From positions 310,001 to 374,000 of the IMG/VR virus record IMGVR_UViG_3300042261_002385: a stretch of 64,000 nucleotides of DNA; one strand, written 5' to 3'. Shown here piece by piece: positions 1,408 to 63,665 of the stretch (position 1 is the first letter of the stretch; the number at the start of each line of letters is the position of its first letter). A program made the position numbers and the translations under genes. The notes beneath the pieces are model-generated. The model saw only the letters and a list, made by a program, of their open reading frames with translations. It was not told the origin of the DNA and made no database searches.

Positions 1408-1888
1408 TCAGGAAGAAATTGATAGAATCAATAAAGTTAAAGATACTAATGATAAATTAGAAGAGTTTTTCAACGATAAAAGAGCAGAGTGGAATAAAAA
1501 TGTTGAGCCACTTTTCAAAATTATTCGTGTAGACTTGACAAATCCAACTTCTGCTAAAGACATTATGGAAGCTCAATCTTTAGCACTTTCCTATAGACAA
1601 GGTATTAACGAACAAATTAATTTCTTCTTAAATAAAAGAAGTAAAGAAACTACTAAAATTAAAAAACTAAGACAAGATAAGTTTATTTTTTACGCAACAG
1701 GATTCGGAGTCAAAACTAATTTAGGGGAAAAAGGAATTCTAATTGACGGACATTTGGCCGAAAATGACAGAAGTTTAGAACTCATCGAATCTTATATTGA
1801 ATTTCTAAGAGACACCGTTAAGAATTTAGAAAGCTTAAGTTACTCAATCAAAAATATGATTGAACTAATGAACTACTTAGGTCGTTAA
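1394..1888 (+). CDS. uvsY: UvsY-like recombination mediator protein
   Basis: Helical 164-aa protein with C-terminus IEFLRDTVKNLESLSYSIKNMIELMNYL resembling T4-like UvsY ends; T4-like replication context. Confidence 0.6.
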   Translation: MNAYNQEEIDRINKVKDTNDKLEEFFNDKRAEWNKNVEPLFKIIRVDLTNPTSAKDIMEAQSLALSYRQGINEQINFFLNKRSKETTKIKKLRQDKFIFYATGFGVKTNLGEKGILIDGHLAENDRSLELIESYIEFLRDTVKNLESLSYSIKNMIELMNYLGR

Positions 1889-3003
1889 TCAATCTTTTTA
1901 TTCCATTTAGTTTCGATTCCCATGTTTCTGAGAACTTGGTGACCACGAGAACAATCCATACATAACTGTTTATCACCATCGTAATCTTTAATAAGAATAT
2001 CACCATCACAGTCTTCACATCTTTCTCTATCACCATAAACACTATGTAAGTAGTAGCAATTTTTGTCAGATAAATTTGACAAACTATCTTTATCTTTACT
2101 TAAAAAACACATCGTATCTACATAAGGATAGTTTCTAAAATCGGCATCTAGTTTTAATTTTACTTCACCAGCGACCTCAGAACCTTTGTAAATAAAAATA
2201 ACATTTTCACCATCATGTGACGATGTTTTCTTTTTATAAAACCAACCTTCGTTATTAGCAAATTCCTTAAATCGATTTACATCTGAGTCACGATTGGTAT
2301 ATACTCTATCCATAAAATACTTAGACTCACAAGGAGACTTCTTTACTTTCCAAACCAAAGCCCTTCCGTGAATCTTATCATCACCATCTACATAAATAAG
2401 TAATTTAACTTTAGTTGGATTTTCTGTGTATATCTTAAATATTTTATTACTTTCTTCTCTCATACAAGAGCTTCCTAAAGTTCCAGTTTTACTGTAGTAT
2501 TTACCCTCATCATAATATTTTGCAATATCTTCTCCAGAAACTAGTTTAAATTGTATTGTAGAAATTTCTGAACTTGCTTTCCATGCATTTACAAAAGATT
2601 CTCTATCTGAATCAGAAATTGAAATATTTTTTAATTGACAAATGTAGTTTACAATTTTTCCGATTTTAACTTCTCCTCTTCCAGGCATAGTAAAAGGATA
2701 GTCTGGATTATCATAAACTTGATCTATTACAGTTTTGACCTTTGATTGATTAATAAAACTTACCATGTCTTCTGAATCAACTAAATCAAAGTAGTTTTGT
2801 TTTACTTTGCTATCTGAAAACCAATGTTGATTTTCAATGACATCTAAAATATGCTCAGCAATTTCAGAAACTTTACCAGATTGTTTAGTCAAAGATTTCA
2901 TCTTCATAATAAAATCAGTGGTAGCATAGATATGACCCTCTAAAAGAGAGAAGATTTCAAATTTTAATCTTTCAAGTAGAAAACCATCGTATCGAGTTAT
3001 CAT
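1885..3003 (-). CDS. Hypothetical protein, paralog of 60212..61669, with CTS-like N-terminus and two CxxC motifs
   Basis: Shares GxLGSSCM, GRALxW, DRxY and YPYxDT motifs with 60212..61669; starts MITRYDGFLLE; TAATATATA upstream. Confidence 0.8.
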   Translation of the reverse strand: MITRYDGFLLERLKFEIFSLLEGHIYATTDFIMKMKSLTKQSGKVSEIAEHILDVIENQHWFSDSKVKQNYFDLVDSEDMVSFINQSKVKTVIDQVYDNPDYPFTMPGRGEVKIGKIVNYICQLKNISISDSDRESFVNAWKASSEISTIQFKLVSGEDIAKYYDEGKYYSKTGTLGSSCMREESNKIFKIYTENPTKVKLLIYVDGDDKIHGRALVWKVKKSPCESKYFMDRVYTNRDSDVNRFKEFANNEGWFYKKKTSSHDGENVIFIYKGSEVAGEVKLKLDADFRNYPYVDTMCFLSKDKDSLSNLSDKNCYYLHSVYGDRERCEDCDGDILIKDYDGDKQLCMDCSRGHQVLRNMGIETKWNKKID

Positions 3004-3031
3004 ATAACCCTATATATTATTTTCAACAAAT

Positions 3032-3391
3032 ATGAAATTCAAATTAAAAGAGGACTGGATACACGAATCAACTTTTTTAGGTAAAACCGTAACAAAAAAG
3101 TTATATGACAAGGGACACATCTTTGAGCCAGAAAATGGAATTTATAAAATCATAGACCATACTGGAGGGATAATAGAATTAGATGAAAATCAAATGAGAA
3201 CTTTACCATCTGATAATTTTGAAGAAGTCATCGAAAAACAAGATGATTTTGAAATTATTATAGAAGAAATCCCAGATGACGATGATATTTTAGTAAGAAA
3301 CTGGAGAATTCAACTAGATGTAAAAACAACTAGAAAGAAACTAAAAGAAGTGCAAAGAATAATAGAAGAATACGTAAAACCAATTTTATAA
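3032..3391 (+). CDS. Hypothetical protein
   Basis: 119-aa ORF, 2 nt from the downstream aminotransferase (operon-like). Confidence 0.7.
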   Translation: MKFKLKEDWIHESTFLGKTVTKKLYDKGHIFEPENGIYKIIDHTGGIIELDENQMRTLPSDNFEEVIEKQDDFEIIIEEIPDDDDILVRNWRIQLDVKTTRKKLKEVQRIIEEYVKPIL

Positions 3392-3393
3392 CA

Positions 3394-4473: not shown

Positions 4474-5178
4474 TTACTTTTTTCTCTTTTTCTTTCTAGC
4501 TTTAGCTTCTTTAGCTTTTGCCCATAGAGCAGCATCTGCTTTTCTAGCACCACCAGCACCAGTGATAAATGAATTTACTCGACCCATACCCCATTGGTGT
4601 TGAGCAACACCAGGTCTATGTCCCGCGTTCCAAGCCTGCATACCTTTAGCAAAAACTTTTCTTAGAATACCCATTGGAATTCCAGATGCTTTCGACTTTT
4701 TCTTTAATGACTTAGTTACTCCTGATTTTTTAGACTCCTCTAAAGAGTCAAGCTCAGTTGATGTAAACTGTTGATTCTTTCTAAGGCTATCTATAATTTG
4801 TCTTACCACAAAGATATCTAAATCCAACTCAATTGAAATTTGTTCTTCAGTTAGTCCCATTTCTAAAAGTTCAGATACATCTTCCATATCAGCATGTGTG
4901 AAGTCCTCAAAACTATAGTTTTCATAGTATTCATCACCTTCCTCTTCCTCTCTTGGATTATATGGACCACCTATAAAGTGCTCACCGGTTGATGATTCCC
5001 TATCTAATTCACCTTGCCATTCTTCAGTTTCTAAAGAATGATATAGTTCTTCTAACTCATCATCAGTCATTACTTCTAACTCATCTAATTCAAAAGTAGA
5101 AGTATTATAAAGAGTCTCAATCATCTCTTGTCTGTTTGATGGCTCTCTGAAGCTTTCGTATGTTCTAAGGTATTTCAT
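4474..5178 (-). CDS. Conserved viral protein (DUF5824-like C-terminal domain) with CTS-like N-terminus
   Basis: LKKKSKASGIPMGILRKVFAKGMQAWNAGHRPGVAQHQWGMGRVNSFITG matches a domain I recognise from T4-like phages and large DNA viruses; starts MKYLRTYESF. Confidence 0.65.
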   Translation of the reverse strand: MKYLRTYESFREPSNRQEMIETLYNTSTFELDELEVMTDDELEELYHSLETEEWQGELDRESSTGEHFIGGPYNPREEEEGDEYYENYSFEDFTHADMEDVSELLEMGLTEEQISIELDLDIFVVRQIIDSLRKNQQFTSTELDSLEESKKSGVTKSLKKKSKASGIPMGILRKVFAKGMQAWNAGHRPGVAQHQWGMGRVNSFITGAGGARKADAALWAKAKEAKARKKKRKK

Positions 5179-5186: not shown

Positions 5187-5738
5187 TTATTTTTCTTTGT
5201 CTCCAAACATTCTTTGGTAGGCTTTAGTAGCGGCTGATTTTTTTGTTTTTACTCTTTTACCTTGACCACCTTTACCAGATGAGTAATCAGCATCCCAATC
5301 TTTTTTATATTCCTTTTTACCTCTAAAGGTATCAATCTCTTTTTTCATCTTACCAGGATTTTTAGTTAAGTATTTTCCAGGAATTTTACGACCCTTATAT
5401 CTTTGAGCTTTGACTCTTTCAGAAATTCCTAAAATTCCTAAAATATCCTTTTCAATCATATCTAAACCTTCATCTATAGATTCAACGTTAGCTTGAAAAT
5501 CAGGGGAGTCACCGGCAAACTTGGCAATTGACATATTATCGATATCAAATTCATATCGAATTGCTAAATCACCTCTTGTAAAATTTATTACAATCTCATG
5601 GTCTGATTTATTCTCCCACTCGTAAATTAAACTGTTATCAGACATTCCATCTATTAGGTCTTTCAATTCTTGCATCTTAGCATCAATCACATTATCGTGA
5701 TTTTCTATGAACTCTCTAAATAATTTGATAATTCTCAT
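5187..5738 (-). CDS. Hypothetical protein with CTS-like N-terminus and basic C-terminal KTKKSAATKAYQRMFG motif (start reassigned to 5738)
   Basis: ATG 5738 (MRIIKLFREFIE) lies 5 nt from a TAATATATA element; the track start at 5774 is upstream of the promoter. Confidence 0.72.
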   Translation of the reverse strand: MRIIKLFREFIENHDNVIDAKMQELKDLIDGMSDNSLIYEWENKSDHEIVINFTRGDLAIRYEFDIDNMSIAKFAGDSPDFQANVESIDEGLDMIEKDILGILGISERVKAQRYKGRKIPGKYLTKNPGKMKKEIDTFRGKKEYKKDWDADYSSGKGGQGKRVKTKKSAATKAYQRMFGDKEK

Positions 5739-8975: not shown

Positions 8976-9758
8976 TTACTCTGAATAAAGTAAGTTAGAA
9001 CTTGGAACTATGTAGTAAGATCTACCATCTTCGTCAAATCCTGTTTTGATACCAGAACCTTTAAACACATATGACTTATCAAACAAAGTTTTTTTACCCG
9101 TATCAGTAACTAAAACTAAATAATGAGTTTTAATTTTAGTAAAGTCACCACTTATAAACACATGATAAAAATTATCAACTAAATCTATTGAATCTAAAGT
9201 TTTAATTTGAATAGTGTATGGGGTTTCTCCGACTTTAAAGTAAGCATCTACTCCAGCTATATCTTGCTCAGAGCTATCCGGTGGTAAAATTTCAACATCA
9301 AATCCTTTACTTAAAGCATATCTTTTGAATAAATCAGAACCTTCTTGTTCTCTAAGTGCACCAGATTCAGTCACTCCTCTAAGTGCATTATAAATCATAT
9401 CAAAGTAGGTTCCATCAACATCGAATAAATCATAACTATTATTTCTAATAAAATTGATTATATCATCTGGGTGATTTACTGTCATATTTAAGTCTAACAT
9501 AATATCAGCTATAACATACAGGATTTTAATGTTCTTTTGAGACTTGTTAAGTAATTCACTTGATAGAGGTCTTCCGTTTCTATTAATTGTATCACCTTTT
9601 TTAATTTCCGGATAATATTCATTAATAATAGATCTCACTAGCTTCTCTTTTTCTTCGGTTTTATCAGGATCAAAATTTATTAAGTAATTATCTGTTTTGA
9701 ACAATCTGATTGGTCTATATTCTGGTTTGAATTTGTCAAATTCTAATATTAATCTCAT
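8976..9758 (-). CDS. Putative PD-(D/E)xK nuclease with CTS-like N-terminus
   Basis: E...QDIAGVDAYF...TIQIK resembles the restriction-like catalytic signature; starts MRLILEFDKF; TAATATATA 4 nt upstream. Confidence 0.55.
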   Translation of the reverse strand: MRLILEFDKFKPEYRPIRLFKTDNYLINFDPDKTEEKEKLVRSIINEYYPEIKKGDTINRNGRPLSSELLNKSQKNIKILYVIADIMLDLNMTVNHPDDIINFIRNNSYDLFDVDGTYFDMIYNALRGVTESGALREQEGSDLFKRYALSKGFDVEILPPDSSEQDIAGVDAYFKVGETPYTIQIKTLDSIDLVDNFYHVFISGDFTKIKTHYLVLVTDTGKKTLFDKSYVFKGSGIKTGFDEDGRSYYIVPSSNLLYSE

Positions 9759-10412: not shown

Positions 10413-10916
10413 ATGAAAGTTATGAAACATCTAATGAGATATGAAGGCTACACATCCAAAGAAAGAGTGGATGACATCTTAGACAAAATATCTAAGTATG
10501 GAATGCAATCGCTTACTACATTAGAAAAAGACTTTCTCGACGCACACAAATCCGGTCAAGAAGAAGAATATCACGACAAACTAGCTAAATCTGAAACAGA
10601 AAACACATTCGAAGATGATAATGGATATTTTAAGTTTGAATTTGATTCTTGTGAAGATTACGGTGATGAAGTTCACTATTTAGGAACACTTTATGTTCCT
10701 GACTTAGTTTGGCCAAACGGTAAAACAATAGAGGGTAGATTAGAAGGCAGAATTGTTGTCTATTCAAACGGACAAGTGTCTCCAGATTTTTATTCAATTG
10801 AGACTGATAAAACAACGGGAGACCACTATGATGTATTTGAATTTTGTAACGGATTGGAATATGAATTAGACTCATTCATTGATTATGTAGTCTCTGAGTT
10901 GGATCAAAAAGATTAA
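10413..10916 (+). CDS. Hypothetical protein with DUF6576-like helical motif
   Basis: VDDILDKISKYGMQSLTTLEKDFLD resembles the DxILDKISxxGxxSLTxxEKxFL tail of Bacteroidota rhomboid proteins; CTS-like start MKHLMRYEGY. Confidence 0.6.
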   Translation: MKVMKHLMRYEGYTSKERVDDILDKISKYGMQSLTTLEKDFLDAHKSGQEEEYHDKLAKSETENTFEDDNGYFKFEFDSCEDYGDEVHYLGTLYVPDLVWPNGKTIEGRLEGRIVVYSNGQVSPDFYSIETDKTTGDHYDVFEFCNGLEYELDSFIDYVVSELDQKD

Positions 10917-10954: not shown

Positions 10955-11452
10955 ATGATTAAAAGATATAATCAATTTGTTAAAGAAAATAAAACAAATG
11001 AAGAGTATGAATACTATACAGAAGTAGATACTCCAAGTTTACCAGCTTTAGGACAAAGAGCAGAGGCGACTCCAAGTGAAGCTCCTATAATGGATGAAAT
11101 GCCAGAAGAAATGACTGGAGAAGTTGAAGAAGTAGGTGTTGATAAATATACAGATGCGCTTCAAAAGTTAGCGGACGCCGCTGGTGTTGAATATGATTCA
11201 GTAGAAAAGTCTGTAGTTATTGATGGTAAAAAAATAACATTCCCGACTGAGACTGAAAAGTATCATGTAGAAGGTGTTAAAAAACCTTTTGCTACTTTAG
11301 AAGAAGTTTTAGCATATTTTGAAAATGGAGTTTCACCACAAGCTAGACAGGAAGTTAGAGATGAAATGTCATCAATTGCTGACGAGGAAGTTTTAGATAG
11401 ACAAGAACAATTTGAATCTAAAAGTTATAAATCTAAAAGATTTAAAAAATGA
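10955..11452 (+). CDS. Acidic hypothetical protein with CTS-like N-terminus
   Basis: Starts MIKRYNQFVKE; TAATATATA upstream. Confidence 0.75.
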   Translation: MIKRYNQFVKENKTNEEYEYYTEVDTPSLPALGQRAEATPSEAPIMDEMPEEMTGEVEEVGVDKYTDALQKLADAAGVEYDSVEKSVVIDGKKITFPTETEKYHVEGVKKPFATLEEVLAYFENGVSPQARQEVRDEMSSIADEEVLDRQEQFESKSYKSKRFKK

Positions 11453-14847: not shown

Positions 14848-14876
14848 AAAAGTCCTCTTATTTAGAGGACTTTTTT
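14846..14876. terminator. Bidirectional intrinsic terminator
   Basis: AAAAAAGTCCTCT-TATTT-AGAGGACTTTTTT between convergent genes. Confidence 0.8.
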
Positions 14877-15967
14877 CTTTTTTTCATATCTTTACTGATT
14901 TCTTTAGAAGTCTTTGATAGATAATCAACTTGTCTTCTAAATTGGTTATAGAAATCATCTTGTCTATTCATAGCACTTGATGGATTCAATCTACCAGTCA
15001 TGTTACCAAATTGAGTAAAAGGTAACACTGAATTTTCCAAACCTGGTGTTTGATGTGAGGTCTCACTTAATATCTCAGGAAATTCTCTTTCAGTTGTGGT
15101 TATATTTTCCGCATCTTTCGTGCCTTTAACTACAATTTTAATTATATTTTGAAAAGTTTCATGACTTAAATTTTTAATTAAGTCTACTATGTGTTTTTCA
15201 TTTTTAACATCGTCATCTGAAAAACCAATCATAGCAACCCATTTCTCACCACTTAGATCTATCAATTCGCTAATATGCGAATCAACATCGTGAATGAATT
15301 CCATCAAAGCGTCTTCTTTTGCTTTTTCGGGATTTGAAGGAGAACCTCCGCGAGATGGTGCAGAAACTCCAACAAAATGACAACTATCTAAATATTTTTC
15401 AATTAATTTATTTTGACTAGGTGTCTCTTTTAAAAGTCTTGGAAAATCCTCTCCTAAGGTTCCATATAAGTAGCTAAATTTAGCTATGTGATTATACATA
15501 CTAAACAATTGTTGTTCTGTTAGAACGTTATCAATAATCCACTCGACACCTTTTCTCATTGTCTCAGACTCGTGGCCTCTAGCTGTAATAATTGCGAATA
15601 TTGCACCGTTTGAAAGACATTCAATAAAATCATTCCATGAAGGAGCAAAACTATTGTTGGCTATCGCTTTCTTTGTATCTTCTAAAAAAATTCCGGGACC
15701 AGACGGACCATTATCTCTAAAATCAGAGTAAGCAGCACCTGGGTCACCATTTAGTAGTCTATAATTTTCTTTATCATCTCTAATTAATGCAAATTCAGCA
15801 GTTGAGACATCAACTGGAATCCAACTATCACCATCTTTTTTTTCTAAATGAATCACAGTTGGCATACTAAGAATATTATCATCCCAGTCAAAAGCATAAT
15901 ATAGCAATACGTTAGTATCTTCAGATACAGAAGATTCTTTAATGAATCGACTAAATTTTTTAATCAT
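14858..15967 (-). CDS. HAD-superfamily phosphatase-like protein with CTS-like N-terminus
   Basis: Motif I YAFDWDDN, motif II ITARG, Lys in KAKE, motif IV GFSDDD; starts MIKKFSRFIKES. Confidence 0.65.
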   Translation of the reverse strand: MIKKFSRFIKESSVSEDTNVLLYYAFDWDDNILSMPTVIHLEKKDGDSWIPVDVSTAEFALIRDDKENYRLLNGDPGAAYSDFRDNGPSGPGIFLEDTKKAIANNSFAPSWNDFIECLSNGAIFAIITARGHESETMRKGVEWIIDNVLTEQQLFSMYNHIAKFSYLYGTLGEDFPRLLKETPSQNKLIEKYLDSCHFVGVSAPSRGGSPSNPEKAKEDALMEFIHDVDSHISELIDLSGEKWVAMIGFSDDDVKNEKHIVDLIKNLSHETFQNIIKIVVKGTKDAENITTTEREFPEILSETSHQTPGLENSVLPFTQFGNMTGRLNPSSAMNRQDDFYNQFRRQVDYLSKTSKEISKDMKKRKKSSK

Positions 15968-15971
15968 TAAT

Positions 15972-16373: not shown

Positions 16374-16475
16374 ATTTTATAATATTTTTTTAGTTATATA
16401 TTAAAATCTAAAATTGCTTTTAGTTGAAACTTTTACCACATTATCACATAAAAATTGAAATTAAAAATTTTTTTT

Positions 16476-19227: not shown

Positions 19228-19231
19228 AATT

Positions 19232-41791: not shown

Positions 41792-42370
41792 ATGAAATGG
41801 ATTAAATTATATGAAGAATTTGACCAGGAGTTAACAGATTTAATAAATCTTTTAAAGAATCATGATATACCTTGTGATTTGTGGGGAACCGGAAAATCAA
41901 AAACCATAAACCACTTACTAGATGAGATAAAAAATAATGAATGTGAGCTTACAGAAATACATGGAACTCTCACAAGATTAATTGAATTTGTAGGTATAAA
42001 AATATTTTATACAGATAAAAAAGGAGAAAAGTGGTTTCTAAAGGAAGATAGACAAGAATTCAAAGACGGTAGAATTCGTAGAAGAAATATGCCTAACTCA
42101 GTATCTGAAAAAATGGTATCAGGAGAAGATCCACTTATCGCAGCGATTAGAGGTATTAGAGAAGAACTTGGTGTAAAAGTTTACGGACATCAACTAAGAA
42201 AAAGAAGAGATTTACACTACGATGGAGGTTCTTTATCTTATCCAGGTTTAGATACAAAATACAAAGGTCATAAGTTTATATGTGAAATTGACGACACTCA
42301 ATTTGAACCAAACGGATATGTTGAAGTTCAACCAGATAAAAAAACCTTTTTTATTTGGAATAAGATATAA
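41792..42370 (+). CDS. Nudix-like hydrolase with CTS-like N-terminus
   Basis: Variant Nudix box EKMVSGEDPLIAAIRGIREELGV; starts MKWIKLYEEF. Confidence 0.65.
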   Translation: MKWIKLYEEFDQELTDLINLLKNHDIPCDLWGTGKSKTINHLLDEIKNNECELTEIHGTLTRLIEFVGIKIFYTDKKGEKWFLKEDRQEFKDGRIRRRNMPNSVSEKMVSGEDPLIAAIRGIREELGVKVYGHQLRKRRDLHYDGGSLSYPGLDTKYKGHKFICEIDDTQFEPNGYVEVQPDKKTFFIWNKI

Positions 42371-45414: not shown

Positions 45415-46005
45415 ATGAAGTATATTGCTACTTATGAAAATTTTAATTATCAGCCAACTAACGAAGAGTTTATTGGTCTATTCAGCGCAAAAACTAGAAA
45501 TCAATACATCAAACAAGGTTTTGATAACGCAACTAAACTAATTGAGAGTGATAAAAATCTTCAAGATAAAATCATGAAAGCCTATGAATCACAATCTGCA
45601 AAACCTTCAGTTGAAGAAATGAAAGATGCGGTAGACATCGTAAGTGGAAGTGACGAAGCTCAAGTTCAAAGTTTAGAAAAAGAATTAAAAGCTGATCCTG
45701 TTACAAGTGGAGAAGCCCAGAATGAATCAACTGCCGAACCAAAGACTTTCATTCAGAAAGCTTTAGGAATTGTAAGTAAAATCTGGAAATTCGGAGTTAA
45801 TGTGGTTCATTTCATGGGAGCTTTAGCAATGATTCTTTTACCATTCACTTCGAAATTAGGAGCAACTGTAATTACATCAGGTGAAGCATCTGGAAATACA
45901 TCACTTTCTTGGTATGGTGGATTATTATTAGTTGGTGGTATTCTTTCAATGATGTATTTCATCTATAGAAGAGTAGCAGCTGCAGAAGATAAAAGAAATG
46001 CGTAA
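45415..46005 (+). CDS. Membrane protein with CTS-like N-terminus
   Basis: Starts MKYIATYENF; two C-terminal TM helices. Confidence 0.72.
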   Translation: MKYIATYENFNYQPTNEEFIGLFSAKTRNQYIKQGFDNATKLIESDKNLQDKIMKAYESQSAKPSVEEMKDAVDIVSGSDEAQVQSLEKELKADPVTSGEAQNESTAEPKTFIQKALGIVSKIWKFGVNVVHFMGALAMILLPFTSKLGATVITSGEASGNTSLSWYGGLLLVGGILSMMYFIYRRVAAAEDKRNA

Positions 46006-47716: not shown

Positions 47717-48370
47717 GTGAAACATCTTAGAAAATTTTTTGAATCAATAGACTACACTAAAGAAGAGATTTTAGAAAATTTTCTGTTTATATCTGATAAA
47801 TTTGGAGAACCAGAAATCCACTCCTCTAAATACGGACAATCTCAAAAATGGATAATCAATTGGGACATAAGATTAGACCTTTCTGTTTTACAAGAAGCTG
47901 AAAATTTAATAAACAAATTAAAAGATTTAGTTGAAGATATTGATGATGTTTTAGCAGCTACATCGAGATTGGAGGACTTTAATATCAATATGAGTCTAAC
48001 CAATAAACTTAGACTCGAGCTAGTTCCTAAAGACACAGGAGATACTAATTACAAATTTATTGATAGATTTGAATCAAGAGCTCTTTATGTGAGAATAAAT
48101 GAGATTGAGAGATTCTTCAACGCTAAAGGATTAAGAATAGAAAAGTGGGATAATGAAAGCTCCTATAATGAATATAATCAAACTAATGAGTTAGAGATTG
48201 TATTGAATAAAAGAGACAACGAGGTCACGCATGAATTCTATAGATTAATTATGGCAGAACTAAATGAGTTTAGAGACGACAGAGATTATCAAGTAAGGTC
48301 TCAAGGTCATAGCACCATAGTGATATATCCTGATGAAGAAAAATCTTGGATCGAAGTAACAAGTAATTAA
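47717..48370 (+). CDS. Hypothetical protein with CTS-like N-terminus
   Basis: GTG start, MKHLRKFFES; TAATATATA upstream. Confidence 0.75.
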   Translation: MKHLRKFFESIDYTKEEILENFLFISDKFGEPEIHSSKYGQSQKWIINWDIRLDLSVLQEAENLINKLKDLVEDIDDVLAATSRLEDFNINMSLTNKLRLELVPKDTGDTNYKFIDRFESRALYVRINEIERFFNAKGLRIEKWDNESSYNEYNQTNELEIVLNKRDNEVTHEFYRLIMAELNEFRDDRDYQVRSQGHSTIVIYPDEEKSWIEVTSN

Positions 48371-49482: not shown

Positions 49483-50049
49483 ATGAAAACCATGAAAAAC
49501 TTCCAATCCTTCAATGAAGGATTTGGCAAAATCACCAATTACCTTAAGGGATTAATTAAACGAGGAGGAGACTTTGCATCAGAAGTTTGGTTAGTTACTA
49601 AAAGAGAAAGTCAGGAAACAAAAATTGCTGTTGAAATACTCGGAAGAATGCTAAAAGGAGAAGAAGTTTCAGATTCTGAAAAAAAATTTGTAAAAAAACA
49701 ATCAGGTGACATTGTTAGAATTCTTCCATTAGTTGCTATATCTGGTCTTCCGATACCTCTTCCGATTACACCATTATTAATAATACTGGGTAAAAAATAT
49801 GGTTTTGATTTCTTACCGAGAGACCATAGAGGTATGCTAAAAAATTATGTAGAATTACCTGAAGACTTAAAATCTCAATTATTGAACTCACCAGAATCTG
49901 GCATGGGATTTCATATTGTAGATATACTTTTAAAAAACGGAAGATTTTTAAAAGAAAGGACTGTAATAAATTCAAGTCAGTTATTATTAAACGTTGATGA
50001 AGAAATCACAACTGAAGATATAGATGAAATTTTTACATCTGAGTTTTAG
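49483..50049 (+). CDS. Hypothetical two-domain protein (LETM1-like N-terminal region) with CTS-like start
   Basis: EVSDSEKKFVKKQSGDIVRILPLVAISGLPIPLPITPLL; starts MKTMKNFQSFNEG. Confidence 0.55.
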   Translation: MKTMKNFQSFNEGFGKITNYLKGLIKRGGDFASEVWLVTKRESQETKIAVEILGRMLKGEEVSDSEKKFVKKQSGDIVRILPLVAISGLPIPLPITPLLIILGKKYGFDFLPRDHRGMLKNYVELPEDLKSQLLNSPESGMGFHIVDILLKNGRFLKERTVINSSQLLLNVDEEITTEDIDEIFTSEF

Positions 50050-51812: not shown

Positions 51813-53099
<1,287 letters not shown>

Positions 53100-53683: not shown

Positions 53684-54694
53684 ATGATTAGTAGATATAA
53701 TGAATTCCTTTTAGAAAAAGAGTTTAATCTTATAGTAGATGATATTTTTCGTTTAGTTGAATCTGAAGGTGTTTGGACAAGTCCAAATACTATTGAATGG
53801 GATATGACTAAAAAAGAAGAACCTCAAACAAGTAAGGATTGGGTTGATAGAACAATTGAAAGGCTTTCAAAATTTGTTAAGAGTTTGAGTAAAGAAAAAG
53901 CTAGAGAGTATTTTGTAAAATTACTCAACAAACTTAAACCACTTCCTGAATTAACCAGAAGATATTTAATTACACATTATACAAGTGTCTTCTTGACAGT
54001 GGCTTCTTTAGCTTTTCTATTCAGTTATCAAGATGACACTAGTGTGTCTCAAGATCCGACTCAAACGGTTAAAGTAGAAAAGGTTGAGAAAATAGATCCT
54101 CAAATTGAACAAGAAGTAGTTGAGTTAACTAAGAAATCATCTTTTGAAGAAGCCCAGAATTCTGTTAAAGAAGTAGAGGCTGGTTTTTCAGATGACAGAG
54201 GAGATAGCGGTAACTATATTGAAGTAACTGGTGGAAAAAGATTTTTAGGAACAAATCATGGAATTTCCGCTCCGGTTTTACAAAAATGGATGCAAGACCA
54301 AGGTATAAAGAGACTTCCAACAAAAGAAGATATGATGAATCTTTCTTATAAAACAGCACTTGAAATCTATAAAAAAGACTACTGGGATGCGCAAAAACTT
54401 ACCGATTTGTGTAATCAAAATGTAGCTAATATTGTTTATGATGGGTGTGTCAACCAAGGTATTGATGCTATGAATGAAATAATCACAAATGCTCTTTCTG
54501 AACAAGGTGTCAAAGTAAAAGGGTGGTGTTTTACTAATAAAGGAATTTCTAAAATGAATTCTTGTAATCAACAACAACTTTTTGATTCTATTAAAAAGGG
54601 AAGAGAATCAAGGTATAAACAAGCTCCTACCTGGTCAAGACATGGTGAAGGTTGGATGAATAGATTAAATTCAATAGAATTTGTTCAAGCATGA
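53684..54694 (+). CDS. GH108-family muramidase with CTS-like N-terminus and internal hydrophobic segment
   Basis: EAGFSDDRGDSGN...GTNHGIS, A.EIYKKDYWD, DG.VNQG, GWMNR; starts MISRYNEFLLE. Confidence 0.8.
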   Translation: MISRYNEFLLEKEFNLIVDDIFRLVESEGVWTSPNTIEWDMTKKEEPQTSKDWVDRTIERLSKFVKSLSKEKAREYFVKLLNKLKPLPELTRRYLITHYTSVFLTVASLAFLFSYQDDTSVSQDPTQTVKVEKVEKIDPQIEQEVVELTKKSSFEEAQNSVKEVEAGFSDDRGDSGNYIEVTGGKRFLGTNHGISAPVLQKWMQDQGIKRLPTKEDMMNLSYKTALEIYKKDYWDAQKLTDLCNQNVANIVYDGCVNQGIDAMNEIITNALSEQGVKVKGWCFTNKGISKMNSCNQQQLFDSIKKGRESRYKQAPTWSRHGEGWMNRLNSIEFVQA

Positions 54695-55662
54695 AACACT
54701 TAAACTCATATAAAGTATTTGAATCAGTTGAAGAAATCAGTTCGATAGTTGATGATTATATAAAAGACTGTAAATGGGATATACAAAACTCACTCGGTAA
54801 TTGTGCATTTTTTGCTAAAGATTTTTATGAATGGTGTCAATCAAAAGAGTATGATTGCAAACTTATCTATTTAAAACAAGATGAAGATTTTATAGTAGGC
54901 GATGAAATAGAAGACCACATTGCTCCTATGATTGATGAACAACTAATAGACTTTGTTTATACTCCAATTGGTGTTTCTAAGAGAGTGAGACAAAACTCAG
55001 CAAATGCTATCAAAAGACAGTTATATCCAGAAATAACTCAAAAAAACAATATTGTTGAAAAATATGGACACTGGGGATATAACACAATTGAAGAAGTTAG
55101 TTATGAAGAAGCGTACCAGGGAAACAATCCAAAATGCACAACAATTGATTATCCAAATAGGTTAAATGAAACTATAAAAGTCCCAATTGAAGTCGGTGAT
55201 ACCGTTTTAGGTGGGAGATTTAAAAATAAAAAGATGATTGTGAAGAAAATCGGAAAGAACAAAAAAGGAGATATTACCATAAATGATAAACCACTTCTTA
55301 AATTTAGATTAGTTAAAGAAAATTTACAAGAAGAGGTTGATTACTATTTCAGACATCTAGAGGATGATAATTTTTTATTTCAAGTAGAAGTTGATTATTT
55401 TAGAATATTTAAACCAATAAATGAATCGGTATATTCATATTCAAATTGTAAACCATTTCAATGGTCCGAAATTTCTGGTGAAATATCAAGATATGTGATT
55501 GAATTGGATGATAGTGAAACCAGCGAAAAGTCGATTGATTATTCTTATGTTGTAAGAAAAATAGGCGATGTAGCTAGTAGAACACAAATACCGACACAGA
55601 TGTTATTAGATGAAAATTTTGATTGTGGTGAAATTTTGAGTTTTACAATTGGTTTTAGATAA
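54691..55662 (+). CDS. Multi-module hypothetical protein with CTS-like start and a possible Cys-His-Asp domain
   Basis: MKHLNSYKVFES; GNCAFFA...DHIAP...IDF; basic middle module; acidic last module. Confidence 0.65.
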   Translation: MKHLNSYKVFESVEEISSIVDDYIKDCKWDIQNSLGNCAFFAKDFYEWCQSKEYDCKLIYLKQDEDFIVGDEIEDHIAPMIDEQLIDFVYTPIGVSKRVRQNSANAIKRQLYPEITQKNNIVEKYGHWGYNTIEEVSYEEAYQGNNPKCTTIDYPNRLNETIKVPIEVGDTVLGGRFKNKKMIVKKIGKNKKGDITINDKPLLKFRLVKENLQEEVDYYFRHLEDDNFLFQVEVDYFRIFKPINESVYSYSNCKPFQWSEISGEISRYVIELDDSETSEKSIDYSYVVRKIGDVASRTQIPTQMLLDENFDCGEILSFTIGFR

Positions 55663-57612: not shown

Positions 57613-57640
57613 AAAAACCAGTCTTAATGACTGGTTTTTT
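57611..57640. terminator. Bidirectional intrinsic terminator
   Basis: AAAAAAACCAGTC-TTAAT-GACTGGTTTTTTT. Confidence 0.8.
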
Positions 57641-58080
57641 TATATTTTTTCAAACTTTATAGTATTAAATATACATTTCACATTGCCTATCATTGATAGT
57701 CCTTTACCACCAACTTGAATTACCTCACCAACATTTATATCAGTAACTAAATCCATTGAATTGTCAGTACTTACAACTAACCAATTGTTTGTATTATCGT
57801 TTAATACTTTTACAGCACTTGGTGTATTTCTATGAGATTGACTTAAATCAATTTCCTTATCTTTGATTAACTTAAATGAACTAGAACTCTGGAATATTTT
57901 AACCTTTGCTAAGGGTTTTAACATCAATTCATTGTTTTCATTTCTTGCTAATAAACATTCAACTTCTAATACATCTGGTGTTCCTGGATTTATAGTAACT
58001 AAAAATCTATCTATGATTTGAACACCGTCTTGTTTATGTTGTTCGTAATTGAATTCCTCAAATATTTTTATATATCTCAT
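57640..58080 (-). CDS. Hypothetical protein with CTS-like N-terminus
   Basis: Starts MRYIKIFEEFNYE. Confidence 0.72.
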   Translation of the reverse strand: MRYIKIFEEFNYEQHKQDGVQIIDRFLVTINPGTPDVLEVECLLARNENNELMLKPLAKVKIFQSSSSFKLIKDKEIDLSQSHRNTPSAVKVLNDNTNNWLVVSTDNSMDLVTDINVGEVIQVGGKGLSMIGNVKCIFNTIKFEKI

Positions 58081-58890: not shown

Positions 58891-59640
58891 TTAGTGTTTT
58901 AAGTTATTTTCTAAGGTGAAATGAACATTAACACTTATATTTCTTGACCACGCATAAGGCATTGCTGAACCAGCAACTTCAAAAGAAATTCTAAAACTAC
59001 CTCTTTCGTAATCTAAATTACCTAATAATTTTTGAGAAATTTCTTCAACTAAATCAAATAAACTTTGTTCAAATTTATTTAGTGATTTACCACTTCCTCT
59101 TAGTGTGGAAATATCAGTCGATATAATACCATTATCATCAAATTTACTAGTAATAGTCATATTTCCATGCCAGATATCTTGAATATTTTTATTTAAAGAA
59201 ATCCTTAATTCTTCTTGACTAAAATATCCTACTTCTTCATCATCTAAATCAACAGAATGTTTTTGTATATCATAATCCATAAAATTTAATTCAAAGTCTT
59301 GGTCATACAACTCAACTAGACAATTGTTAATCATATTTAGCGTCTCAGGATTATAAGCTGGATCACGATGTCTTAGTTCTCCTGTCTCATCAGACTCTTT
59401 AACATGAGTTACTCCTTTAGCTGGCGCTAAATCTCTTAAATCAGTTACCTCAGATGGTTTTCCTTTTTTTCTCTTACTTTTAGTTCTTAAATAAAAAGAT
59501 GGATCTCCTGAACCATCCATAGCTCCGACACCTGGTAAACTTCCAACTGTTGCTGATACTACAGGTCCAGCTCCAGCAGTTGAGGAAGCAGTTGCTACCG
59601 CATTTTCTTGAAACTTTTTATATGATTTGATATATCTCAT
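58891..59640 (-). CDS. Two-module hypothetical protein with CTS-like N-terminus
   Basis: MRYIKSYKKFQEN; Ala/Gly-rich then basic segment ending HVKE/S, followed by an acidic globular domain. Confidence 0.72.
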   Translation of the reverse strand: MRYIKSYKKFQENAVATASSTAGAGPVVSATVGSLPGVGAMDGSGDPSFYLRTKSKRKKGKPSEVTDLRDLAPAKGVTHVKESDETGELRHRDPAYNPETLNMINNCLVELYDQDFELNFMDYDIQKHSVDLDDEEVGYFSQEELRISLNKNIQDIWHGNMTITSKFDDNGIISTDISTLRGSGKSLNKFEQSLFDLVEEISQKLLGNLDYERGSFRISFEVAGSAMPYAWSRNISVNVHFTLENNLKH

Positions 59641-59883: not shown

Positions 59884-60165
59884 TTAAAGATATTTTATTT
59901 CAGAATAAAGAGGTCTATTTACTCTATGTGACATATAACCTTCTATACCTCTTGAGTCTAAACCTAATTCCTTAATCAACTCTTGAGAGTATTGAACAGG
60001 ATTTTTACCCATTTCTATTTCTGACTCAATGTCTAAACGATTTATTAACTCTCTTACTTCAACCGCGCTCATATTTAACTTACCTAATTGTCTTCTTAAT
60101 TCATCAACAAATTCTTCCGGTGTGTAGTTTGATTCAAATAATTTAAAAGACTTTAAGTGCTTCAT
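59884..60165 (-). CDS. Small hypothetical protein with CTS-like N-terminus
   Basis: MKHLKSFKLFES; TAATATATA 4 nt upstream. Confidence 0.75.
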   Translation of the reverse strand: MKHLKSFKLFESNYTPEEFVDELRRQLGKLNMSAVEVRELINRLDIESEIEMGKNPVQYSQELIKELGLDSRGIEGYMSHRVNRPLYSEIKYL

Positions 60166-60211: not shown

Positions 60212-61669
60212 ATGATAAGCAAATATTTAGAATTTATTAACGAGTCAAAAGAACTCATTTTAGAATCTGACGTTGTCTATTCTAAAATGTTTAGAACAGC
60301 ATTAACAAAGATTGATAGCCCAATATCAAAAATACTTTTGGATGTAGAAAATAAAGACCTACCAGTAGCTTCAAACTATTTTGATTTAGCTAGAGGAAAA
60401 AACGACACACTTTCTGTTATTCCAGATAGAAAAGCTAAAGAGATTTTAGAAGATACAAAAGAAATGGTTAGATTTACTGGCTCAGGTGGTGGTTGGTTAA
60501 AACACTCAGATGCTAACACATCTATATTCCAACAATTAGGATATGAACCAGAAGGTGAAGTTTATCAACCTAATTCAACTGCAATAGGTGAGGTAGTTTC
60601 AAAAGTAACATCACAAACATCAGGAAAAGTTTGGTGTTATGTGAAATTTCCAGACGGTAAAGGTGTTTATAATCAAGAGAAACTTAGAGTAGTTGATGAG
60701 AGACTAAAAGAAGTTTGGTCAAAAAATAGACAAGAAGTTAGAATAGGAAGAGCTATAAGAGCACTATTAACAGTAGCAGGTGAGAATGTTTTGGATAAAG
60801 ATTTAGAGGTTTTTGTAAATCTTTGGAAAGCAACAATTGATAAAATGAATGATAGATTCCAATATTTTGATGTAGTTGAAGGCCAAGATATCGGTCACTG
60901 GTATCACTACTCTAACTACAAAGAAAGAAGTGGAAGTCTTGGTTCTAGTTGTATGTCAAATGTAAATTCTAATTATTTCGATATCTATATGACAAATACA
61001 GATGTTTGTAAATTAATAATACTTAGATCTGTTGAAGATGATTCTCTAATTGTTGGAAGAGCTTTACTTTGGACACTTACCGATGGTAAAAAATTTGTTG
61101 ATAGAATTTACACAATTCAAGATTCAGATGTTCAACTTTTTAGAGACTATGCAAGAGAGAATGGTTGGTATACAAAACAATATAATTCATCTTCAGATTC
61201 TGGTAGAGCAAATGCTCCTGATGGAACACAAGTTGATTTAGGAAAAATTACCGTAGATATTAAAGCAGGAATGTATGAAGCTTATCCTTATTTAGATACT
61301 CTTAAATATTTTAAACCAAGAGAAGGAACACTTTCTAATGTGAGAACTGGTCGAGGTGATGAATATACATTAGAGGACACTTCTGGTGAACTTTGGAGAT
61401 GTGAATACTGTGGTGGATCAGGAATGCAAACTTGTGGTAACTGTGATGGGGACGGTTATTGGGATTGTCACAGATGTAGTGGATCTGGAGAAAGAGAGTG
61501 TGGTGAATGCGATGGTTCTGGAAAGGTAGAGGGAGACGAAGGTGAAGAGGAGTGTCCAGAATGTGGTGGGTCAGGAAACAATGAATGTTCATATTGTGAT
61601 GGTTCAGGAAGAGAAGATTGTGATGATTGCAACGGAAGAGGAGAACACTCTTGTTATGAATGTCAATAA
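60212..61669 (+). CDS. Hypothetical protein with C-terminal DnaJ-type CxxCxGxG zinc-finger repeats; paralog of 1885..3003
   Basis: Seven CxxCxGxG units (CEYCGGSG to CDDCNGRG) plus CYEC; GSLGSSCM, GRALLW, DRIY core; starts MISKYLEFINES. Confidence 0.82.
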   Translation: MISKYLEFINESKELILESDVVYSKMFRTALTKIDSPISKILLDVENKDLPVASNYFDLARGKNDTLSVIPDRKAKEILEDTKEMVRFTGSGGGWLKHSDANTSIFQQLGYEPEGEVYQPNSTAIGEVVSKVTSQTSGKVWCYVKFPDGKGVYNQEKLRVVDERLKEVWSKNRQEVRIGRAIRALLTVAGENVLDKDLEVFVNLWKATIDKMNDRFQYFDVVEGQDIGHWYHYSNYKERSGSLGSSCMSNVNSNYFDIYMTNTDVCKLIILRSVEDDSLIVGRALLWTLTDGKKFVDRIYTIQDSDVQLFRDYARENGWYTKQYNSSSDSGRANAPDGTQVDLGKITVDIKAGMYEAYPYLDTLKYFKPREGTLSNVRTGRGDEYTLEDTSGELWRCEYCGGSGMQTCGNCDGDGYWDCHRCSGSGERECGECDGSGKVEGDEGEEECPECGGSGNNECSYCDGSGREDCDDCNGRGEHSCYECQ

Positions 61670-61672: not shown

Positions 61673-62386
61673 ATGAAGAATATAATAACCAATTTTAGGA
61701 TTTTTGAAAAAAAAGAAATTGAAAAAGAGCAAAAATTTCAGCCTTCTAGTGAAGTGCAAAAAGAAGTTGACCGATTCGAAACAAGGTGGGAAATTAAGTT
61801 AGATCCACGTTTCACTATGAAAGAGATAGAAATCATTTCAGAAGGATTAGAATATTATAATACTAAATTTATTAAAAGTAGAATTGATAGAATAATTAGA
61901 AAAGATTTAGGTGGAGTTCATGGTCGTTGGAAAAATACCGAGACAAAAAAATGGATGACACTAAATCCTAGAATCTTTAATTTTAAACGTAGATGGAAAG
62001 ATGAAGACACTGATATACCATATGCACTTTTCACAGTAGTTCATGAGATAGCACATTGTGTTGACTACTTAGAAAAAATATCGTTCTCAAAAAAGTGGCA
62101 AGCAATCTCTGGTTGGAAAAAATGTGATATCAATGATAGAATACCAGAAGGATACAAAAGATATATTGAAAAAAGACCAGGTAGAAAATTAACCGGTCAT
62201 AAAAAATCAGGATGGATTTATAAAGAAGGTTCTGACTTTTGTAGAAAATATACGTCTCGAAATCCAAGAGAAGATTTCGCTGACTGTTTGGCATTTGTAA
62301 TTTTAGGATTTGAAGAAAAACTAAAAGGAGAAGGAGGCTTGAAAAAGCTTGAAATCATTAAGCAATTACTCAAAAAGATAGATTAA
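61673..62386 (+). CDS. Zincin-like metallopeptidase
   Basis: HEIAH followed by Y..RNPREDFAD (downstream Glu ligand). Confidence 0.68.
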   Translation: MKNIITNFRIFEKKEIEKEQKFQPSSEVQKEVDRFETRWEIKLDPRFTMKEIEIISEGLEYYNTKFIKSRIDRIIRKDLGGVHGRWKNTETKKWMTLNPRIFNFKRRWKDEDTDIPYALFTVVHEIAHCVDYLEKISFSKKWQAISGWKKCDINDRIPEGYKRYIEKRPGRKLTGHKKSGWIYKEGSDFCRKYTSRNPREDFADCLAFVILGFEEKLKGEGGLKKLEIIKQLLKKID

Positions 62387-62441
62387 TTTGAAATTTTAAG
62401 TGTTTTTTACTTTATATATAACTTAAAAATAAATTTAAGAT

Positions 62442-63272
62442 ATGTTATTAAAAGTAGGAAGTAAGGGAGATGATGTAAAAAAACTCCAAACAAAATTAGG
62501 ATTGACATCAGATGGTTCTTTCGGACCTGGAACTGAAAAAGCAGTTAAGGCTTGGCAAACAGCAAATGGACTAAAAGCGGATGGTATAGTAGGTGATGGA
62601 ACCTGGTCTAAACTATTCGGAGAATCAGCTCCAGTAGCTGCAGCAAAACCAGCAGTTGTAATACCACCATCCGATTTCAAATTGGAAGCACTAAAAGGAC
62701 ATATTCCAGATGCGGTTATAGCTCAAATACCGGATACAGCAGCAAAATTTAATATCACAAATCCATTGAGATTGGCTCATTTTTTAGCACAATGTGGTCA
62801 CGAAAGTGGTGGATTTAAAGCAGTTTCAGAAAATCTAAACTATTCAGCCAAAGGATTACTTGGAACTTTTCCAAAATACTTTAACGCTACAACAGCTGCT
62901 CAATATGAAAGAAAACCAGAAATGATTGCTTCAAGAGTTTATGGTGGAAGAATGGGCAACGGAGATGAATCTACAAAAGAAGGATTTAAGTTTAGAGGAA
63001 GAGGATATATTCAATTAACTGGAAAATCAAACTACACTAATTTTACGAAATTTATTGGAGAAGATTGTATTGCAAATCCAGATTTAATTGCTACAAAATA
63101 TCCTTTAGCTTCAGCAGCTTTCTTCTTTGATTCAAATAAACTTTGGTCAATATGTGATTTAGGTTCATCTGATGATGTTGTAACTAAAGTTACTAAGAGA
63201 GTTAATGGGGGAACTATTGGATTAGCTGATAGAATTAAACACTTTAAAGAATATTATGCTCTATTAAAATAA
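62442..63272 (+). CDS. Endolysin: peptidoglycan-binding domain plus GH19
   Basis: LKVGSKGDDVKKLQ..L....DG.FG..T..AV..WQ...GL.ADGIVG; FLAQCGHESGGF, FRGRGYIQLTG, VTKRVNGG.IGL.DR. Confidence 0.95.
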   Translation: MLLKVGSKGDDVKKLQTKLGLTSDGSFGPGTEKAVKAWQTANGLKADGIVGDGTWSKLFGESAPVAAAKPAVVIPPSDFKLEALKGHIPDAVIAQIPDTAAKFNITNPLRLAHFLAQCGHESGGFKAVSENLNYSAKGLLGTFPKYFNATTAAQYERKPEMIASRVYGGRMGNGDESTKEGFKFRGRGYIQLTGKSNYTNFTKFIGEDCIANPDLIATKYPLASAAFFFDSNKLWSICDLGSSDDVVTKVTKRVNGGTIGLADRIKHFKEYYALLK

Positions 63273-63326
63273 AAATCAAAAAAATGATTTTAGAAAATAA
63301 TATATAAAAAAAATAATTTTACTAAA

Positions 63327-63665
63327 ATGAAACATGTTAAAACTTTTGAAGGTTTCTTTTCAAGATTATTCGGAGGAGACAAAATCGGAGACTGTGACAA
63401 AATGACTACTAATAGAGATGGTGATGGTATTGAAGGTATGGGTACTGATTATGTAATATTTGGTGGTAGAAAATTCGAAGAAGATGATATCGTTTATGCT
63501 GATGCAAAAGACCCAAAAAACAACGGATTTGAGAATAAATCAGGTATCTTACCAAGAATTGGTTACAGAGAGAAAGATTCAAAAAACGACGGAAAACTTA
63601 TTATCCCAGGTGGTGATATGTTGAAAAAATGGTTGAAATCTAGAGGACTCGGAAGTAGAATATAA
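63327..63665 (+). CDS. Hypothetical protein with CTS-like N-terminus
   Basis: MKHVKTFEGFFS; TAATATATA upstream. Confidence 0.72.
   Translation: MKHVKTFEGFFSRLFGGDKIGDCDKMTTNRDGDGIEGMGTDYVIFGGRKFEEDDIVYADAKDPKNNGFENKSGILPRIGYREKDSKNDGKLIIPGGDMLKKWLKSRGLGSRI

Follow-up and report, generated by a model that had tools for sequence, protein, structure and literature searches.

A recurring N-terminal peptide resembling the T4 capsid-targeting sequence in a lineage of huge metagenomic phages

The window and its recurring N-terminal peptide

We analyzed a stretch of 64,000 nucleotides (positions 310,001 to 374,000, hereafter the window) of the IMG/VR record IMGVR_UViG_3300042261_002385 (436 kb). An exact 30-mer match ties the window to this record, and an exact protein match ties it to the metagenomic phage contig 3300042261|Ga0451520_0000008 of JGI (522,324 bp). 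About one quarter of the window's genes (20 of 78) encode proteins that begin with a similar short peptide, here called the tag. The window has a G+C content of 30% and uses the standard genetic code, and stop-codon recoding was rejected as a source of the apparent N-termini, because reading through TGA or TAG barely alters the coverage by open reading frames (ORFs). Its centre (19.2–36.6 kb) is a baseplate and tail block with gp5-like OB, CHAP, and VanY wall-hydrolase domains, and its flanks mix small genes of no known function with host-like enzymes. No tRNA genes were found in the window, and no nucleotide-level relatives of it were found among deposited phages. By protein similarity, the nearest records are the huge metagenomic phages LR745206 and LR756500-4; the closest complete relative is LR745206 (635 kb), which was fetched complete and in which 924 genes were called. 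Over 41 kb, LR745206 shows synteny with the window, in inverted orientation. More distant protein relatives are the jumbo phages MA9V, PAU, PTm1, and pT24, which have Bacteroidota hosts, and the Lak phages, and two contigs from the window's own sample fall in an LR756501-like group. The window belongs to a T4-like lineage whose host is probably a member of the Bacteroidota.

The original prediction, made from the letters of the window, held that about 20 unrelated proteins carry a capsid-targeting N-terminus, and all 20 of the peptides that it quoted are the N-termini of the best ORFs at those positions. Eight of these genes (1885, 4474, 5187, 8976, 14858, 57640, 58891, and 59884) lie on the minus strand, so that the coordinate by which each is named is its 3' (low) end, and the peptides quoted for 10413 and 49483 begin at a second methionine, three codons in. 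Enrichment at N-termini over internal positions, suggested then as a check, proved to be strong. With a start at residues 4–9, the pattern [FYW]xx[FYW] is present in 24 of the 78 genes, where internal positions predict 5.2 (p = 1e-10); a stricter rule with K/R before and E/D after the aromatic pair selects 18 of 78 against 1.5 expected (p = 1e-14), and [YFW]xx[YFW][ILVM]xE gives 5 matches against 0.14 expected. As a positive control, the tag rules applied to 119 kb of T4 (177 genes) returned IPII and IPIII together with one false positive, or ~1% of genes versus 23% in the window. In LR745206, 98 of 924 genes pass the rule (21.5 expected, p = 8e-35), a figure that ATG-only gene calling makes an undercount, and these genes are spread over the whole genome.

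Stacking 116 tags from the window and LR745206 gave the consensus M-K-[YH]-[IL]-K-K-[YF]-x-x-F-[E/I]-x-E-[SN]. The first aromatic falls at residues 5–7 in 105 of the 116, and a column that lies outside every rule, six residues before the second aromatic, is occupied by I/L in 100. The tags are 10–13 residues long and come in two versions, class A (MK[YH][IL]KxYxxFE[SN]) and the shorter class B (MIxKYxxF[IL]xE[SN]). The proteins behind them are indeed unrelated for 19 of the 20, the departure being 1885 and 60212, which are paralogues (33% identity across 254 aa). Orthologues retain the tag at 27–72% identity; the version has been switched between orthologues for 49483, 8976, and 38480, and the domains behind it differ for 54691. 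The tag is a modular, clade-wide unit. Synonymous codon use at its conserved F, Y, E, and K residues equals the genome average, which argues for selection on the peptide. Faster evolution of tagged genes was considered and rejected, with a median identity to LR745206 of 54% for tagged and untagged genes alike. The tags alternate K/E with single aromatics, and a hydrophobic window is found at no tagged N-terminus; because the hydrophobic core of 7–15 residues after a basic N-region is lacking, the tag is not a Sec, Tat, or lipoprotein signal.

The protein encoded at 60212 allowed conservation to be followed in a larger family. It has >630 metagenomic homologues, and 112 of the 118 full-length ones keep the tag as MI[KR][KR]YxxF[IVL]NES. 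In an AlphaFold model built with 71 sequences, residues 1–17 form a detached helix with pLDDT <50, whereas the body reaches ~80–95; the tag is the best conserved part of the family despite its low-confidence position in the model. Comparison of the model with the PDB gave no significant fold match, only weak domain-level hints (BSD2/DnaJ zinc finger, GNAT-like, and SH3-like), and no relatives of the family were found in 185,579 cellular genomes.

Tagged genes also share an upstream element. The window contains 28 copies of the octamer AATATATA, of which 24 lie within 60 nt upstream of a start codon. In LR745206, the pattern [AT]TATATA stands before the genes for the tube, sheath, portal, protease-scaffold, and capsid protein, and in the window it stands before the baseplate genes; as AATATATA precedes these LR745206 genes, we treat it as a putative late promoter. 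It had been proposed that nearly all tagged genes sit behind TAATATATA-type promoters or in late operons, and this holds: 16 of the 20 have [AT]TATATA in the 60 nt before the start, and each of the remaining four is the second gene of a unit that begins with this promoter. The same pattern precedes 20 of the 58 untagged genes (odds ratio (OR) for tagged versus untagged 7.6, p = 6e-4). In LR745206, tagged genes are likewise enriched for [AT]TATATA (OR 3.3, p = 4e-8) and are depleted for the host-type (Bacteroidota-type) TAnnTTTG element (OR 0.39, p = 0.04). These promoter associations suggest that the tagged genes are co-expressed with the head proteins. Most TAATATATA elements start 12–13 nt, or ~28 nt, before the ATG (e.g. 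upstream of 19232, 22521, 25755, 37092, and 38480). Of the AATATATA copies that lie up to 60 nt ahead of a gene start in LR745206, 74 sit at -12 or -13; with so short a spacing many late mRNAs would be nearly leaderless.

The original prediction would have been contradicted by a motif equally common on cytoplasmic genes, and it is not: the clear cytoplasmic enzymes of the window are all untagged. The untagged set includes PurA, deformylase, RpiB, FKBP, formyltransferase, NT5C, a class-II aminoacyl-tRNA synthetase (aaRS)-like protein, and IF3, as well as a GH19 endolysin candidate and all baseplate genes.

Head machinery, scaffold repeats, and capsid propeptide

In T4, the capsid-targeting sequence (CTS) MKTYQEFIAE is a peptide of 10 residues that is cut once and is sufficient for loading (bioRxiv 10.1101/2021.01.19.427310). 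Residues 4 and 7 of IPIII serve targeting, and residues 8 and 10 direct processing, with Glu at the cut (PMC9026906). We read from the T4 genome that ipII and ipIII both start with MKTYQEFIAE and that ipI starts with MKTFKEFTST...ITE. Class-B tags carry Y/F, F, [ILV], and E in the spacing of the T4 CTS and fit [YFW]xx[YFW][ILVM]xE exactly; in class-A tags the aromatic pair and [ILV]-F-E are likewise present, shifted by one residue. The maturation site of T4 gp23, FGSFLTE65↓A (the arrow marks the cleavage site, which is presumed in the sequences below), also matches the tag pattern.

The corresponding head genes are present in LR745206. Its portal, capsid protein, sheath, and tube were found by phmmer with T4 proteins, and Pfam returned Portal_T4 (2.7e-57) and Gp23 (1.8e-26). 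Immediately upstream of the capsid gene lies a gene for 707 aa whose N-terminal domain aligns to T4 gp21 and retains NRNxRxY, GExxHP, and VSSR. With this protease domain as a tblastn query, 734 phage records were matched that are annotated as head maturation protease or prohead core, and a gp21-type protease is also found in >80 IMG/VR relatives, in LR756500-4, and in Lak phages. The LR745206 enzyme groups with those of T4, cyanophages, and PA5oct-type phages.

This protease is fused to a scaffold-like region of ~10 tandem 14-aa repeats, nYSEY[LI]AEN[LV]DKNI. LR756501 and LR756504 also have the YSEY repeats, LR756500 has them in degenerate form, and Lak-A1 lacks them. The core of the scaffold unit, Y-x-x-Y-[LI]-x-E-N, is that of the class-B tag, the tag core being [YF]xx[FY][ILV]xE[SN], and the pattern derived from the scaffold is enriched 11-fold at the N-termini of LR745206 (26 versus 2.35, p = 8e-19) and 35-fold at those of the window. 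A similar element lies in the capsid protein, whose own propeptide holds the tag-like site EYAEFHSINE↓NA; the surrounding element WM[SA]E[YM]AE[FY]HSINE↓NAY is conserved in 54 capsid proteins. Residues 1–46 of the tagged protein 58891, comprising the tag and the next ~40 residues, align by BLASTP to residues 30–83 of the gp23-like capsid protein of LR745206 (E = 7e-5), and its orthologue LR_93266 aligns to the same region (E = 9e-10). Given the resemblance of the tag to both the scaffold repeats and the capsid processing region, all three appear to be variations of one element, as in T4.

Several further observations concern these head genes. Directly after the LR745206 capsid gene (L006 6508-6897) lies a tagged protein of 129 aa with an NFACT-R (RNA-binding) domain. 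LR745206 also encodes a free-standing capsid N-terminal propeptide region (291407-291880, 157 aa) and a free-standing C-terminal part (207176-207907, 243 aa). The Lak megaphages show another recurring N-terminus, M(N/I)K.IK.L[LVM]E[SG]LFD[DE], at Lak-A1 (L101) 15109-16494, 25273-25971, and 19123-19824 and at Lak-B5 (L219) 8398-9636 and 34867-35931. The Lak capsid protein has LAWMSQLAHNTAKLNE↓DAF where the LR745206 clade has WMSEYAEFHSINE↓NAY, and the Lak protease is without YSEYIAE repeats. A second dialect of the tag system may be at work in the Lak phages.

A capsid-targeting role weighed against alternatives

The reading that we favour, and consider fairly probable, is that the tag is a T4-type capsid-targeting propeptide that mimics a scaffold unit and that the fused gp21-type protease cuts off. 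The targeting part of the original prediction gains from the likeness to the T4 CTS, from the gp21-, gp20-, and gp23-type genes of LR745206, and from the likeness to scaffold and propeptide, whereas injection, like binding, cleavage, retention, and the later action of the cargo, is a step that we infer. The tagged proteins would be made late, along with the head and tail proteins. The tag would form an amphipathic helix, one face of which carries I/L, Y/F, and F, and dock onto the procapsid scaffolding core, which should be possible because it imitates one scaffold repeat (YSEY[LI]AEN) and the equivalent element of the capsid propeptide. The scaffold-fused prohead protease would then cut after Glu ([ILV]-x-E↓[SN]), leaving the mature protein free inside the head, where it is expected to stay with the DNA and to leave with it at the next infection. 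In this way, dozens of phage-encoded proteins would probably enter each new host.

We judge the finding to be a greatly expanded variant of a known mechanism. As with the T4 CTS (IPI, IPII, IPIII, and Alt; gp21), a peptide of ~10–19 residues stands at the extreme N-terminus of otherwise unrelated proteins, with aromatics at i and i+3 followed by [ILV]-x-E; the lineage has, in LR745206, a T4-type portal, protease, and capsid protein; and the tag is similar to the cleavage site of the capsid protein itself and accompanies late co-expression with head genes, here judged from promoters. The differences from T4 are in scale and kind. The predicted cargo goes far beyond T4's few internal proteins, as had been proposed: 20 of 78 genes in the window and ~100 of 924 in LR745206 are tagged, against 3–4 in T4 (2 of 177 by the same rule). 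There are two tag versions, usually with K/R-rich starts, and the LR745206 protease is fused to a scaffold of tandem tag-like repeats. Whereas T4 internal proteins are small, highly basic, and DNA-associated, the cargo here is mostly acidic, reaches 741 aa, and includes membrane proteins and enzymes.

Other systems resemble the tag in part. Giants of the phiKZ type (phiKZ gp175, 201phi2-1, SPN3US gp245) also load tens of different proteins into the head, trimmed there after Glu by a gp21-related protease, and ~50 head proteins are reported for SPN3US (PMC9026906, PMC7411985). Their motif, however, is S/A/G-x-E, beyond which little else determines the cut, and a short N-terminal address common to the proteins has not been defined for them, whereas here [ILV]-x-E lies within a conserved tag, P3 is I/L/V/F, and the lineage is T4-like. 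Membership in a phiKZ-like class of processed head or inner-body proteins was rejected because P3 is not S/A/G and because the LR745206 protease groups with T4-type rather than gp175-like enzymes. In encapsulins, a short terminal cargo-loading peptide suffices to send unrelated enzymes inside an HK97-fold shell. Encapsulin peptides differ from this tag in that they are usually C-terminal, bind the shell directly, are uncleaved, and are unlinked to DNA packaging or delivery. The link between encapsulins and HK97 is noted in PMC13669383. Head-borne anti-defence or channel-forming proteins that are released on infection are known from P1 (Dar), P22, and T7 (ejection proteins) (PMC12810830, PMC9024508, PMC8402733). 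Unlike the tagged proteins, those are few and are loaded by protein-protein hierarchies with no shared short peptide. In the literature, we found no paper describing this tag, or a CTS outside T4-like, phiKZ-like, or P1 systems.

Most tagged proteins have no family detectable with Pfam, relaxed Pfam, or PHROGs. The original prediction had listed a broad enzyme cargo, from which a GH108 protein (53684, Pfam 8e-17), a zinc-finger protein (60212, with eight CxxCxGxG repeats), and membrane proteins (three, each with one membrane segment) were recovered. For its Nudix, DHH, and zincin assignments, the Pfam matches are sub-threshold, although DHH and HExxH motifs are visible in the sequences. The nuclease gained no support from Pfam, relaxed Pfam, or PHROGs, and neither did the HAD phosphatase; the sole HAD-type gene (50824-51255) is untagged. 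Tagged proteins of LR745206 include a DHH protein with a winged helix, a 2H-phosphoesterase with a DEDD exonuclease, an Rnl1-like RNA ligase, a CCA-adding or poly(A) polymerase head domain, a GH108 protein, and a nucleotide cyclase. Such a range would fit counter-defence without proving it, and an anti-defence role may be proposed from the domains.

A number of observations weigh against capsid targeting. After removal of the tag, the proteins of the window have a median pI of 5.3; they are mostly acidic, span 93–741 aa, and include the three with membrane segments. The Rnl1-like RNA ligase, CCA-adding or poly(A) polymerase head, and cyclase of LR745206 could equally well be cytoplasmic, and T4 RNA ligase is not a head protein. 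The tagged genes, ~100 of 924 in LR745206, are very many for capsid cargo. Class-A tags fit the scaffold repeat less exactly than class-B tags do, and the upstream I is at -5 in the scaffold repeat and at -6 in the tags. The gp21-like protease expected elsewhere in the genome is present in LR745206 and >80 relatives, but the search for it, and for the scaffold and capsid genes, in the 522-kb contig to which the window belongs did not find them among the matches listed: the protease query gave only nearer relatives of LR745206, a DNA scan for the conserved motifs did not have the contig among its listed matches, and a walk along the contig reached as far as a repeat-rich region whose called genes have non-ATG starts. 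The clade is uncultivated, and its virion cargo is predicted here from genes. No tagged N-termini were seen in the first 50 kb of the cultured relative PTm1, so that the proteomics of a cultured relative cannot be borrowed.

Some of these points would be natural if the tag were an address or handle for a target other than the capsid, such as a membrane or compartment helix, a degron, a protease or chaperone site, or another late structure. The short amphipathic N-terminal helix, the three tagged membrane proteins, one of them a membrane-anchored muramidase, the obvious cytoplasmic roles of the RNA ligase, CCA-adding-like enzyme, cyclase, and exonuclease of LR745206, and a share of ~10% of all genes are all in keeping with such an address, which we nevertheless regard as unlikely. 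It leaves unexplained that the tag reproduces both the scaffold repeat and the site in the capsid propeptide, down to the [ILV]-x-E cut by T4-type proteases, that it matches the experimentally defined T4 CTS position by position, and that tagged genes have the head and tail promoter in common; nor does the tag have the hydrophobic core of a secretion signal. A little more doubtful still is the possibility that the tag loads the procapsid core but that the proteins are assembly helpers or ballast, later degraded or retained, with no injected arsenal. Most T4 core proteins are indeed degraded and expelled (bioRxiv 10.1101/2021.01.19.427310), ejection of folded proteins of 40–85 kDa and of membrane proteins would be awkward, the acidic cargo is not DNA-binding like the T4 internal proteins, and the capsid-protein arm on 58891 suggests a structural role. 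The recognisable domains, however, are those of conflict-type enzymes (phosphoesterases, muramidase, zincin, RNA repair, and cyclase) and not structural repeats; Alt (682 aa) and proteins fused to the CTS, beta-galactosidase for instance, pass through the T4 tail on delivery (PMC9026906); and each tag offers one site beside a conserved folded body, as in the once-cut T4 internal proteins.

That the motif has no role as a peptide, and is a nucleotide-level or translation-initiation feature of nearly leaderless late mRNAs or a by-product of A+T-rich codon bias, seems to us very improbable. The low G+C content of the genome and a promoter-like element that often ends 5 nt before the ATG would suit it. 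Against this, baseplate, capsid, and portal genes share the promoter spacing yet have no tag, substitutions are conservative at the amino acid level (F/Y, I/L, and K/R), synonymous codon use at the conserved positions follows the genome average, and inside the same proteins the motif turns up much less often than at their N-termini.

Beyond the capsid-targeting propeptide that we favour for the tag itself, we hold more tentatively, as a proposal falling just short of an even call, that it constitutes a clade-wide code. In phages of 0.4–0.7 Mb (LR745206, LR756501-4, and hundreds of IMG/VR contigs), one scaffold-like tag would send ~1/10 of the proteome, or 50–100 proteins, to the procapsid, including enzymes of RNA repair, phosphoesterases, a nucleotide cyclase, a muramidase, and membrane proteins. 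On this view, heads would serve as pre-loaded vehicles whose cargo could be predicted from sequence. If so, the virion cargo of a whole uncultivated group of huge phages could be listed from genomes, which no other present method can do for phages without a cultured host. The three-protein trick of T4 would have been scaled >10-fold, with huge capsids shipping enzymes as well as DNA, and RNA-repair and nucleotide-signal enzymes would make sense as counter-defence before any phage gene is expressed. Tag, scaffold repeat, and capsid site together suggest a recruitment rule, imitation of one scaffold unit, that might be reused for packaging in phage-derived particles.

Tagged and neighbouring genes

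The tagged genes of the window are collected in Table 1. One further gene, at 985, was missed by the original prediction; its tag is uncertain because no late promoter lies within 60 nt.

Table 1. Genes of the window whose products carry the tag, with promoter positions, domains, and orthologues
Coordinates	Strand	Product	Tag	Context and orthologues
985..1407	+	possible 21st tagged protein	MNKVDKFLEFFLE	passes strict rule; orthologue has MSEINKFLNFIKD
1885..3003	-	372 aa; no function found in Pfam or PHROGs	MITRYDGFLLE (class B)	AATATATA at -15; paralogue of 60212; LR745206 orthologue (56% identity) has MLTKYESFLLE
4474..5178	-	234 aa; C-terminal DUF5824 (PF19141, 2.3e-13)	MKYLRTYESFRE (first quoted as MKYLRTYESF)	second gene of late unit beginning at 5738
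5187..5738	-	183 aa	MRIIKLFREFIE	AATATATA at -13; orthologue LR_139937 has MIKKWNQFIREFIE
8976..9758	-	260 aa	MRLILEFDKF	AATATATA at -13; distant orthologue LR_129820 has other version, MKKFTEYIKES
10413..10916	+	167 aa, acidic; DUF6576-like stretch	(MKV)MKHLMRYEGY	orthologue (72% identity) has MYNDMKHLMRYEGY
10955..11452	+	165 aa, very acidic (pI 4.4 after tag)	MIKRYNQFVKE	AATATATA at -28; orthologue has MIKKYNQFVND
14858..15967	-	369 aa	MIKKFSRFIKES	second gene behind 15972-16373, which has the promoter; orthologue (57% identity) has MIKKFNQFLEN
38480..40705	+	741 aa, DHH-family phosphoesterase-like (Pfam DHH 1e-4, sub-threshold; HKDLDG and DHH motifs visible)	MNIIDYKLFSE	AATATATA at -12; orthologue has other version, MISKYNQF, fused to identical INEEVGLRN
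41792..42370	+	192 aa; weak Nudix match (E = 0.0076, below cut-off)	MKWIKLYEEF	TATATATA upstream
45415..46005	+	196 aa; one predicted membrane segment (126-148)	MKYIATYENF	
47717..48370	+	217 aa; GTG start	MKHLRKFFES	AATATATA at -12; LR745206 orthologue likewise with TAATATATA promoter and GTG start, tag MKHLKNFLES
49483..50049	+	188 aa; one membrane segment (77-103)	(MKT)MKNFQSFNE	orthologue has other class, MIEKFDEF
53684..54694	+	336 aa; membrane segment (95-113) and GH108 muramidase domain	MISRYNEFLLE	orthologue of identical architecture
54691..55662	+	323 aa	MKHLNSYKVFES	start overlaps end of 53684, one unit; orthologue of 189 aa lacks first domain, N-terminal tag still present
57640..58080	-	146 aa	MRYIKIFEEF	AATATATA at -32
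58891..59640	-	249 aa; copy of capsid-protein N-terminal arm after tag	MRYIKSYKKFQE	BLASTP match to LR745206 capsid protein
59884..60165	-	93 aa	MKHLKSFKLFES	AATATATA at -12; orthologue has MKYIKSYKIFES
60212..61669	+	485 aa; folded body, C-terminal zinc-finger repeats	MISKYLEFINES	paralogue of 1885
61673..62386	+	237 aa; HEIAH zincin-like motif (Pfam Peptidase_Mx1 E = 0.0046, sub-threshold)	MKNIITNFRIFE	3 nt behind 60212
63327..63665	+	112 aa	MKHVKTFEGF	AATATATA at -28

Among the untagged neighbours, the host-like proteins related to translation are IF3 (6967-7506, +; Pfam IF3_N and IF3_C), peptide deformylase (44375-44938, -), an FKBP-type isomerase (42424-42840, +), and the class-II aaRS-like protein (46168-47004, +). 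The metabolic genes encode a formyltransferase (50058-50624, -), an NT5C/HAD 5'-nucleotidase (50824-51255, -), adenylosuccinate synthetase (51813-53099, -), RpiB (55924-56373, +), a metallophosphoesterase (48593-49354, -), and an aminotransferase (3394-4473, +), and several of them are preceded by the Bacteroidota-type TAnnTTTG element.

In the tail and baseplate block, 22521-25712 (+) has a weak CHAP domain, 29213-31486 (+) a gp5-like OB fold, and 31786-34008 (-) a VanY peptidase domain, so that the tail is already equipped with wall-degrading activities of its own. The untagged gene 62442-63272 (+), with PG_binding_1 and GH19 domains, is likely the true endolysin; the tagged, membrane-anchored GH108 protein (53684-54694) would then be an additional wall hydrolase that serves a different role.

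A family-B DNA polymerase is represented at 7542-8975 (+) by its C-terminal part only (Pfam positions 137–237 of 453 matched at residues 12–122), and the polymerase may be split. An extremely basic ORF of 48 aa (MAKKSTTSSVRVHIARPHKKRPG...) at 42841-42987 (-) has no Pfam match, is preceded by a late-type promoter, and is conserved in LR745206; its product could be a DNA-condensing or ribosome-associated peptide. On the same contig, ~8–30 kb to the left of the window (L224 15000-23432 and L225 1-11726), lie a Gly/Ser/Thr-rich ORF of 2259 aa and units of ~1.3 kb with open frames on both strands and starts other than ATG, a repeat-rich, fibre-like region.

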